This document shows positions 46,586-46,657 of a DNA stretch of 64,000 nucleotides, one piece after another. The notes beneath the pieces are model-generated. The model was given only the letters and a program-made list of their open reading frames with translations. It was not told the origin of the DNA and did no database searches. Made by a program: the position numbers and the translations under genes. Origin of the DNA: Adineta vaga (taxonomy: Eukaryota > Animalia > Rotifera); contig CP075493.1 of assembly GCA_021613535.1 (NCBI GenBank), positions 5,518,001-5,582,000 on the forward strand, in the 5' to 3' direction. Each line of letters starts with the position of its first letter. The stretch's first letter is position 1.

Positions 46586-46657
46586 AGACTATTCTTGTGC
46601 TAGCCGAATCTGTACAAAAAATGTTATATCGGAATCGTGTACTACGAGTTTGCTTCA
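46586..46657 (+). repeat. 72-bp copy of the rDNA target-adjacent segment inside the LINE 3'UTR
   Basis: Ungapped 66/72 identity to 42088-42159, and to 10779-10850, 21279-21350, 31637-31708 and 57360-57431. Confidence 0.95.

Follow-up and report, generated by a model that had tools for sequence, protein, structure and literature searches.

The stretch of DNA analysed here (the window) comprises 64,000 nucleotides of the bdelloid rotifer Adineta vaga (assembly GCA_021613535.1, contig CP075493.1, positions 5,518,001 to 5,582,000) and holds five ribosomal DNA (rDNA) units, one of which is interrupted by a full-length long interspersed nuclear element (LINE) that lies on the + strand and therefore antisense to the rRNA genes, placed on the - strand by Rfam. 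The 3' untranslated region (3'UTR) of this element contains a 72-bp block that closely resembles the rDNA beside which the element is inserted. Our main result is that this block is the best-kept part of a longer segment, which by its alignment to rDNA is an antisense copy of the presumed leader of the 5' external transcribed spacer (5'ETS), the core promoter and at least one spacer promoter module, and that the captured copy is present across Adineta and Rotaria lineages. Coordinates are collected in Table 1.

The element is an intact member of the Hebe group of bdelloid rotifer LINEs, a group whose placement in the jockey clade we take from PMC2861651. Its second open reading frame (ORF2), whose stop codon occupies 46553-46555, shares 75% amino acid identity with A. 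vaga Hebe ORF2 (D1D8L9_ADIVA), the nearest named protein; the remaining ORF2 protein matches are from Adineta and Rotaria, and in an ORF2 tree the window copy and Hebe fall within one starred clade of 22 rows (the row for locus L119, where the longest ORF is not ORF2, was disregarded). Hebe elements have been described as starting with CATT, ending in poly(A) 11 bp past AATAAA, generating duplications of 7-15 bp and encoding three knuckles in ORF1 (PMC2861651, Gladyshev & Arkhipova 2010). The window LINE has the same ends, with a CATT 5' start, poly(A) 11 nt past AATAAA and short duplications, and its ORF1 likewise has three Cys/His knuckles, two found by script (residues 235 and 255) and the third read by eye near residue 275; a Pfam search of ORF1 returned no match. 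As in Hebe, copies of the family are full-length with internal deletions and not 5'-truncated, apart from one 5'-truncated relative in the array at C4 3.1 Mb. Alignment of the filled site with four empty sites gives a 7-bp target site duplication at the window copy, and public contigs of two runs (X1 and X2) span the empty site, joining 42155 to 47067. The original prediction had held that the block is neither a target site duplication nor a long terminal repeat, and this stands, with the addition that a separate short duplication (GCTTCAT/GTTTCAT) exists.

The 3'UTR block and its rDNA counterpart

The block aligns to its rDNA counterpart without gaps and with 66 of 72 positions identical (46586-46657 against 42088-42159), beginning 30 nt past the ORF2 stop and ending 400 nt ahead of the poly(A), all as originally reported. 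It is also correct that the rDNA segment is a normal part of every unit and that the copy flanking the element carries the rDNA alleles: each of the five rDNA units in the window holds the segment once, the flanking copy is identical to the others, and a 27-nt probe of the segment has six matches in the window compared with none in 100 shuffles. The strands of the rRNA genes and of the LINE confirm the further claim that the element RNA would be antisense to the pre-rRNA side of the block. RNA folding of the block found no stable structure on either strand, with z between -0.9 and +1.0 and predicted folds that are inconsistent. An assembly artefact is ruled out by the identical block, at the same UTR position, in six other genome copies and in elements of other species.

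One claim did not hold, namely that the homology ends exactly at the insertion point. Against uninserted units the gapless match runs to 78 bp, 6 bp beyond that point, and the rDNA-like stretch of relatives belonging to other species and genera is 135-258 bp long. The continuation past the block is weak in the window copy alone, its local score being reached by 34 of 2000 shuffles. Because the stretch in relatives continues past the block edge, the sharp edge that was seen first is, judging from these alignments, a boundary of conservation and not of the captured segment.

Table 1. Features of the LINE and of the rDNA unit that carries it (window coordinates).
Feature	Position	Strand	Basis or remark
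3'UTR block, antisense copy of presumed rDNA leader	46586..46657	+	66/72 identical to host rDNA
Decayed rDNA-like continuation: TATATA motif and upstream-box remnant, with 2-nt insertion	46658..46700	+	~66% to host rDNA; multi-species alignment
rDNA copy of block, taken as first ~72 nt of 5'ETS (pre-rRNA leader)	42088..42159	-	518-589 nt upstream of 18S 5' end
Spacer promoter-like modules of inserted unit	47072..47860	-	equals 10851-11640 of uninserted unit; end coordinate transferred from reference unit
18S of inserted unit	39758..41570	-	Rfam
Full-length Hebe-group (jockey-clade) LINE	42161..47064	+	ORFs, AP-endonuclease and reverse transcriptase domains, Hebe ORF2 similarity, seven full-length genome copies; 5' boundary +/- ~3 nt
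ORF1, gag-like, 496 aa	42388..43878	+	matches Hebe description in PMC2861651
ORF2, 904 aa, N-terminal apurinic/apyrimidinic (AP) endonuclease and reverse transcriptase	43841..46555	+	Pfam PF03372, PF14529, PF00078
3' end, Hebe type: AATAAA, 11-nt spacer, 8-nt poly(A)	47040..47064	+	poly(A) at 47057-47064
Left target site duplication copy, 7 bp, GCTTCAT	42154..42160	+	empty- versus filled-site alignment; overlaps CATT start of element by microhomology
Right target site duplication copy, GTTTCAT, one mismatch	47065..47071	+	followed by rDNA promoter and spacer

Leader, presumed promoter and spacer modules of bdelloid rDNA

In the reading direction of the rRNA, the spacer ahead of the block contains ~10 modules, each ~85 bp long and each consisting of an upstream box of GAATAAGCA-ATGGATTGAC type followed ~15 nt on by TATATA-TGAAG. 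The last of these modules adjoins the block, which places a TATATA-TGAAG motif at the block edge. A pattern scan of metagenome contigs returned 33 true loci, ~26 of them rDNA in which 18S, ETS, block and spacer are contiguous and three of them LINE 3'UTRs. Across ~24 distinct bdelloid rDNA sequences the majority fraction is 0.91-0.98 from ~+115 to TATATA, with 0.91-0.95 for the leader, and 0.76-0.88 in the 60 nt upstream; the block is the best conserved part of the ETS and promoter. Because of the motif, its recurrence in the spacer modules and this conservation profile, RNA polymerase I (Pol I) probably starts at the TATATA-TGAAG edge; if the start were further downstream, the block would be core promoter and not leader. 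A deep contig of run X10, whose status as RNA is a guess, ends at 42035 with 14 unrelated letters.

Two further observations concern this region. The presumed first ~215 nt of the 5'ETS together with the initiator (window 10637-10856; loci L067-L120) are 87-98% conserved across the ~24 bdelloid rDNA contigs, the 18S sequences of which are 96.5-99.9% identical, and such conservation is unusual for a Pol I promoter region. A contig of run X1 contains only a 60-nt core of the block (42078, 42138) between unrelated sequence on both sides, and is probably a further UTR variant or the rDNA of a relative.

The captured segment in A. vaga and in other lineages

The A. vaga genome (100.8 Mb, six contigs) contains seven full-length copies of the element in three subfamilies, and the block occupies one and the same place in the UTR of all seven. 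When the window copy is compared with the L003 subfamily, identity is 97% in the block, 89% in ORF2 and 70% in the remainder of the UTR, which bears out the expectation that the block would be better conserved than its surroundings. The block differs at 2 of 72 positions between A. vaga subfamilies whose UTRs differ by 30%, and in the comparison of the window copy with L003 it ranks 114th among 1990 intervals of its size. We read the block as having been kept by purifying selection in A. vaga.

Elsewhere, the block was found in two elements of contig L061 (el2 and el3), in L063, L065/L066, L081, L117 and L119, in L122 (Rotaria sp. Silwood2), in L123, which lies on the same contig as the rDNA of its host, and in L124, a more basal lineage; with the exception of L123, the host assignment of metagenome elements is indirect. 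The longer rDNA-like stretches of these relatives contain leader, core promoter and at least one spacer module. They amount to 135 bp in L061 el3 (84% identity to A. vaga rDNA), 258 bp in L122 and 237 bp in L124 (79% and 72%, respectively, to the rDNA contig L102), and in all three they cover TATATA, upstream box and second module, while L063 carries ~4 spacer modules in its UTR. The order of rDNA features is preserved in the UTR segment, from ~+92 past TATATA and the upstream box to additional modules. Agreement of LINE copies with the rDNA consensus is 81% for the leader and 67% for the promoter, which mirrors the gradient within rDNA itself.

Decay of the segment is also evident. In A. vaga lineages the initiator context has acquired insertions of 2-5 nt, the upstream box is ~60-66% host-like, and the TATATA of L007 is degenerate; L062 retains the upstream-box part only, and from L125, in a sister clade, the segment is absent. 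Hebe copies match the L063 UTR at 67% across the block and module region, the Hebe UTR having been judged from match coordinates only. Because block-bearing and block-less lineages are intermingled in the ORF2 tree, we read the capture of host promoter and leader as old, with later decay or loss in some lineages including Hebe proper, and the published 72-bp UTR repeats of Hebe may be decayed spacer modules.

An unrooted tree of the blocks is without resolution, and a single LINE clade is not rejected (P of the approximately unbiased test, p-AU, 0.51). The LINE blocks of A. vaga nevertheless group together in a starred clade on a long stem (0.21), have LINE-specific substitutions in common, and thus have not been recently overwritten by rDNA. 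In each of the three pairs with a known or inferred host, the best match of the block is the leader of its own host, albeit by small margins (64/70 versus at most 58; 53 versus at most 51; 60 versus at most 57). L123 and its host have several leader variants in common, with only one strictly private column, and the promoter variant of L119 recurs in rDNA contigs L075 and L106 of the same metagenome set. We regard these likenesses as suggestive of a block that tracks the leader of its host. Substitutions in the block show no wobble bias, with 17 G-U-compatible and 16 incompatible transitions.

Insertion sites

Five of the seven full-length A. vaga copies are located in spacer promoter modules, and two are outside rDNA, at unrelated sites (C4:10.69 Mb and C5:16.8 Mb). 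On an empty reference unit the window copy maps to 10850 (+ strand), a second copy to ~11200 (- strand, duplication GAATAAGCAAAAC), a third to ~11530 (- strand), and the remaining two to ~11606-11618 (- strand) with a common 5' junction, so that these two are probably one event. The family thus occupies about five rDNA positions over 800 bp in both orientations, and four of six independent block-bearing events fall in a zone that represents 0.024% of the genome (binomial P ~5e-14, ignoring selection on survival). The predicted clustering is therefore real as a strong enrichment in the spacer, and does not extend to a single rDNA position. Of the outcomes named beforehand as speaking against the original idea, copies lying mostly outside rDNA were not what we found, but relatives without a block do exist (L062 and L125).

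Beyond A. vaga, L123 lies in spacer modules ~300 bp upstream of the gene's TATATATGAAAC, and its duplication starts at the same GAATAAG box as that of A. vaga L006; L065 lies in spacer-type repeats that match the rDNA contig L068. Spacer residence extends to the block-less relatives, L125 being in spacer repeats downstream of 28S and L062 in spacer-type tandem repeats. Block-bearing L002, L004, L122 and L124 lie outside rDNA. ATGAAT-type flanks are found in L005, L122 and L124, the flank of L004 is AATCAATCATC, and the flanks of non-rDNA copies resemble spacer boxes; these box-like target sites point to recognition by protein. The insertion preference is regional and motif-like, not single-site, and is common to relatives that lack the block.

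Two junctions coincide with the block edge in the same orientation: that of the window copy in rDNA, and one in L061, where a 5'-truncated el3 adjoins the final block nucleotide of the el2 UTR. The latter is the one instance of the anticipated insertion of an element into another at this edge, and it comes from another species' contig. In the same contig the 5' end of el2 is joined at the other edge of the block of el1. L061 (6380-6400 and 12840-12845) is a chain of three Hebe-group elements on a single contig that is labelled 4x, and the chain could represent nested insertions or template jumps of the reverse transcriptase.

Three other loci deserve mention. In a second rDNA array (L010, L011, L012; G000 C4 3.07-3.12 Mb), the spacer of which is 93% identical, the 5'-truncated relative (72% identity) occupies ~11536 (+ strand) of at least three units, a pattern suggestive of a single insertion that unequal exchange has multiplied. 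In the 5' flank of L037 and at 3640-3710 of L123, the 5' end of a sense-oriented LINE lies ~45-50 nt downstream of a spacer TATATA-TGAAG/TGAGG; motif and LINE point the same way, so that transcripts started by Pol I in the spacer could run on into the element. In a scaffold of A. ricciae (L064, CAJNOJ010000016.1) a LINE-to-rDNA join at 13227-13233 crosses a run of N and is flanked by ordinary genes; it may be a scaffolding misjoin and was not used as an insertion.

Possible roles of the captured segment

Our tentative preference, held with some doubt, is that the captured module acts in cis as Pol I promoter/leader-like DNA on the integrated LINE copy. The module would bind host Pol I initiation factors and would either drive antisense Pol I transcription or hold the copy in active nucleolar chromatin. 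The choice of nick would fall to the endonuclease, acting at spacer boxes (GAATAAG or ATGAAT type) or the initiator, and the block would have no part in it; the block edge would coincide with the window insertion simply through the position of both, conservation boundary and insertion, at the presumed transcription start. Entire modules have been kept, and even multiplied, in several lineages, as such a role would lead one to expect. Precedents are found in HeT-A and TART, telomeric relatives with promoters in the 3'UTR, and in the spacer-derived repeats of the Daphnia transposon Pokey. Several points weigh against it. The position of the Pol I start is drawn solely from motif recurrence and conservation, and the probable RNA contig stops at 42035. 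Because of the initiator insertions, the weak upstream box and the degenerate TATATA of L007, promoter activity may have been lost in A. vaga lineages even though conservation of the leader block persists. What a LINE would gain from antisense transcription by Pol I is not obvious, and the stronger conservation of leader over promoter is equally consistent with a pairing function.

Such a pairing function might be that of an address tag in the LINE RNA, in which the block forms a hybrid with the nascent leader, or with the non-template strand that is displaced at active promoters, and so tethers the ribonucleoprotein near them; in a strong form of this idea, the edge of the hybrid positions the nick. 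We consider tethering by the RNA possible but doubtful. The block is unstructured on both strands (z ~0) and free to pair, its conservation is centred on the presumed transcribed part, it is closest to its own host's leader in all three pairs, and L123, with its host-specific leader variants, sits on the contig of the host rDNA. The rDNA insertions are all within 800 bp upstream of the presumed start, two independent junctions fall at the same block edge in the same orientation, and the first-strand nick of the window copy is on the RNA-pairing strand, 6 nt inside that edge. However, the block is neither necessary for residence in the spacer, where L125 and L062 live without it, nor sufficient, since L002, L004, L122 and L124 carry it outside rDNA; most rDNA copies are at upstream boxes and in the opposite orientation, where the UTR homology of A. 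vaga elements is nearly gone; and at 400 nt from the 3' end the block cannot prime reverse transcription. Moreover, transitions lack the wobble asymmetry that pairing with RNA might leave, the own-host margins are small, and the L061 junction is that of one contig labelled 4x. That base pairing partly directs this AP-endonuclease LINE to the rDNA promoter, with the hybrid edge marking the nicks of both the window copy and L061 el3, seems to us unlikely. RNA-guided targeting by the block is a possibility and not a finding.

It is similarly improbable that the segment is a functionless by-product of life in rDNA, having entered by recombination, read-through or template switching and kept its likeness by gene conversion. 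Copies do lie a few hundred bp from homologous rDNA, best matches are to the own host, the L119 promoter variant also occurs in rDNA contigs of its metagenome set, and the block tree leaves a single origin neither shown nor excluded. There is also a parallel in Pokey, an rDNA-specific piggyBac transposon of Daphnia for which concerted evolution has been proposed, its spacer repeats and those of the rDNA forming no separate clusters (PMC3849761). Yet the A. vaga blocks, although a starred clade with LINE-specific substitutions, differ at so few positions where the surrounding UTRs have diverged by 30%; the position and orientation of the block are the same in all lineages, including copies far from rDNA and another genus; and for a neutral relic this old one would expect alignment to fail, just as it does elsewhere in the UTR.

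Transfer in the reverse direction, with a LINE 3'UTR as the source of the promoter and leader of bdelloid rDNA, is compatible with the unrooted block tree and with spacer modules that are repeats of one unit. We consider it very improbable, since in every rDNA contig the leader runs on into a conserved ETS, a sister LINE clade (L125) is without the segment, and the LINE segment is collinear with several rDNA features at once. A structural misreading, in which the LINE ends at 46585, a 72-bp target duplication flanks it and the later 400 bp are a separate poly(A) element at the same site, has next to no chance of being correct. The two 72-bp copies do form direct repeats around the ORFs, and rotifer R9 is known to generate long target duplications (cited in PMC2861651), but the true duplication is the 7-bp one. 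A 72-bp duplication with a second poly(A) element is ruled out by the non-rDNA and other-species copies, which share the block and the 400-bp tail and have no rDNA block before their 5' end.

Condition of the surrounding rDNA units

The unit that bears the LINE has a rearranged 28S (35201-39089), in which only 35201-37024 (91%), 37363-38168 (79%) and 38934-39089 match normal 28S and no long ORF is contained; this unit is probably dead. The 28S of the first unit is interrupted by a 581-bp insertion (5934-6514) with a flanking 61-bp duplication of 28S sequence and short ORFs only, which may be the remnant of an R-type element, and that of the second unit by an 88-bp insertion (15517-15604) with a 10-bp duplication, which neither the other units nor metagenome rDNA contain. 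On its promoter side (47065-47300) the flank of the LINE differs by ~3% from other units, a variant also present in an empty-site contig of run X1, and the ETS-side flank is 99.6% identical.

Relation to known elements

R1, R2, R4 and R9, the last two of which are known in A. vaga, are likewise non-LTR (long terminal repeat) elements specialised on rDNA arrays. They use a single nucleotide position in 28S or 18S and are co-transcribed with rRNA, and R2, R4 and R9 have a restriction-like endonuclease, whereas the window family has an AP-endonuclease, is found at more than one place in the spacer and in either orientation, and has ends of Pol II type (CATT, AATAAA). It thus lacks the one-position specificity of R1, R2, R4 and R9 but has a non-random preference for rDNA. 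To our knowledge, all known rDNA LINEs are inside 18S or 28S, and the usual view is that target-specific LINEs locate their sites by contacts between protein and DNA. In the read-through ends of R1Bm and R2 and in the telomere-repeat tails of bdelloid Athena elements, complementarity of the 3' end to the target anneals to nicked DNA and primes synthesis. Those elements resemble the window LINE in having target-like sequence in their RNA, but its block is 400 nt inside the poly(A) end, and pairing at the extreme 3' end is not indicated, the 3' junction consisting of poly(A) followed directly by the duplication. The telomeric elements HeT-A and TART, of the jockey clade, have promoters in their 3'UTRs, the antisense promoter of TART among them, which are served by Pol II and are of the element's own origin. 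They are related LINEs with a promoter-like module in the 3' region, as is the window LINE, although its module is a captured host Pol I promoter/leader of putative activity. A similarity of Hebe-type ORF1 to that of HeT-A/TART is stated in PMC2861651.

Hebe itself has been described as subtelomeric, without target preference and with a 72-bp tandem repeat in its UTR, and no link to rDNA was reported (PMC2861651). The window family differs in its residence in rDNA spacer modules and in keeping a well-conserved rDNA leader block. The original prediction knew of no described element with such a layout, but Pokey is a published analogue: it carries rDNA spacer repeats, for which the authors favour a role in transcription (PMC3849761, Elliott et al. 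2013). Both elements dwell in rDNA and have captured a non-coding spacer piece that is host-like and far more conserved than the element itself, and the non-rDNA copies of both lie at sites that resemble the rDNA target. Pokey, however, is a DNA transposon that uses one TTAA in 28S and carries a 200-bp spacer repeat in its 5' non-coding region, whereas the window family is a LINE that inserts in the spacer and has a presumed antisense promoter and transcript start in its 3'UTR, overlapping its own target zone.

In full-text literature searches, neither a Hebe-like element of the rDNA spacer nor a LINE that has captured a Pol I promoter turned up in any paper, and a 2024 review lists 5S promoters, 28S fragments and Pokey spacer repeats as the only rDNA-derived parts of mobile elements. 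As far as these searches reach, three things are new: an AP-endonuclease lineage of the jockey clade that is specialised on promoter-like modules of the rDNA spacer, the keeping of an antisense host Pol I promoter and transcript start (both presumed) across bdelloid genera, and the extension to retrotransposons of the Pokey-like case of an rDNA element that carries rDNA sequence.

Implications

Lineages in which the block is intact, decayed or lost provide a natural comparison for effects on transcription, chromatin state or homing, and homing, if true, would be of interest for programmable LINE-based insertion. For the published Hebe elements, the analysis supplies a likely origin of the 72-bp UTR repeats, and for bdelloid rDNA it reveals a leader and promoter that are unusually conserved.

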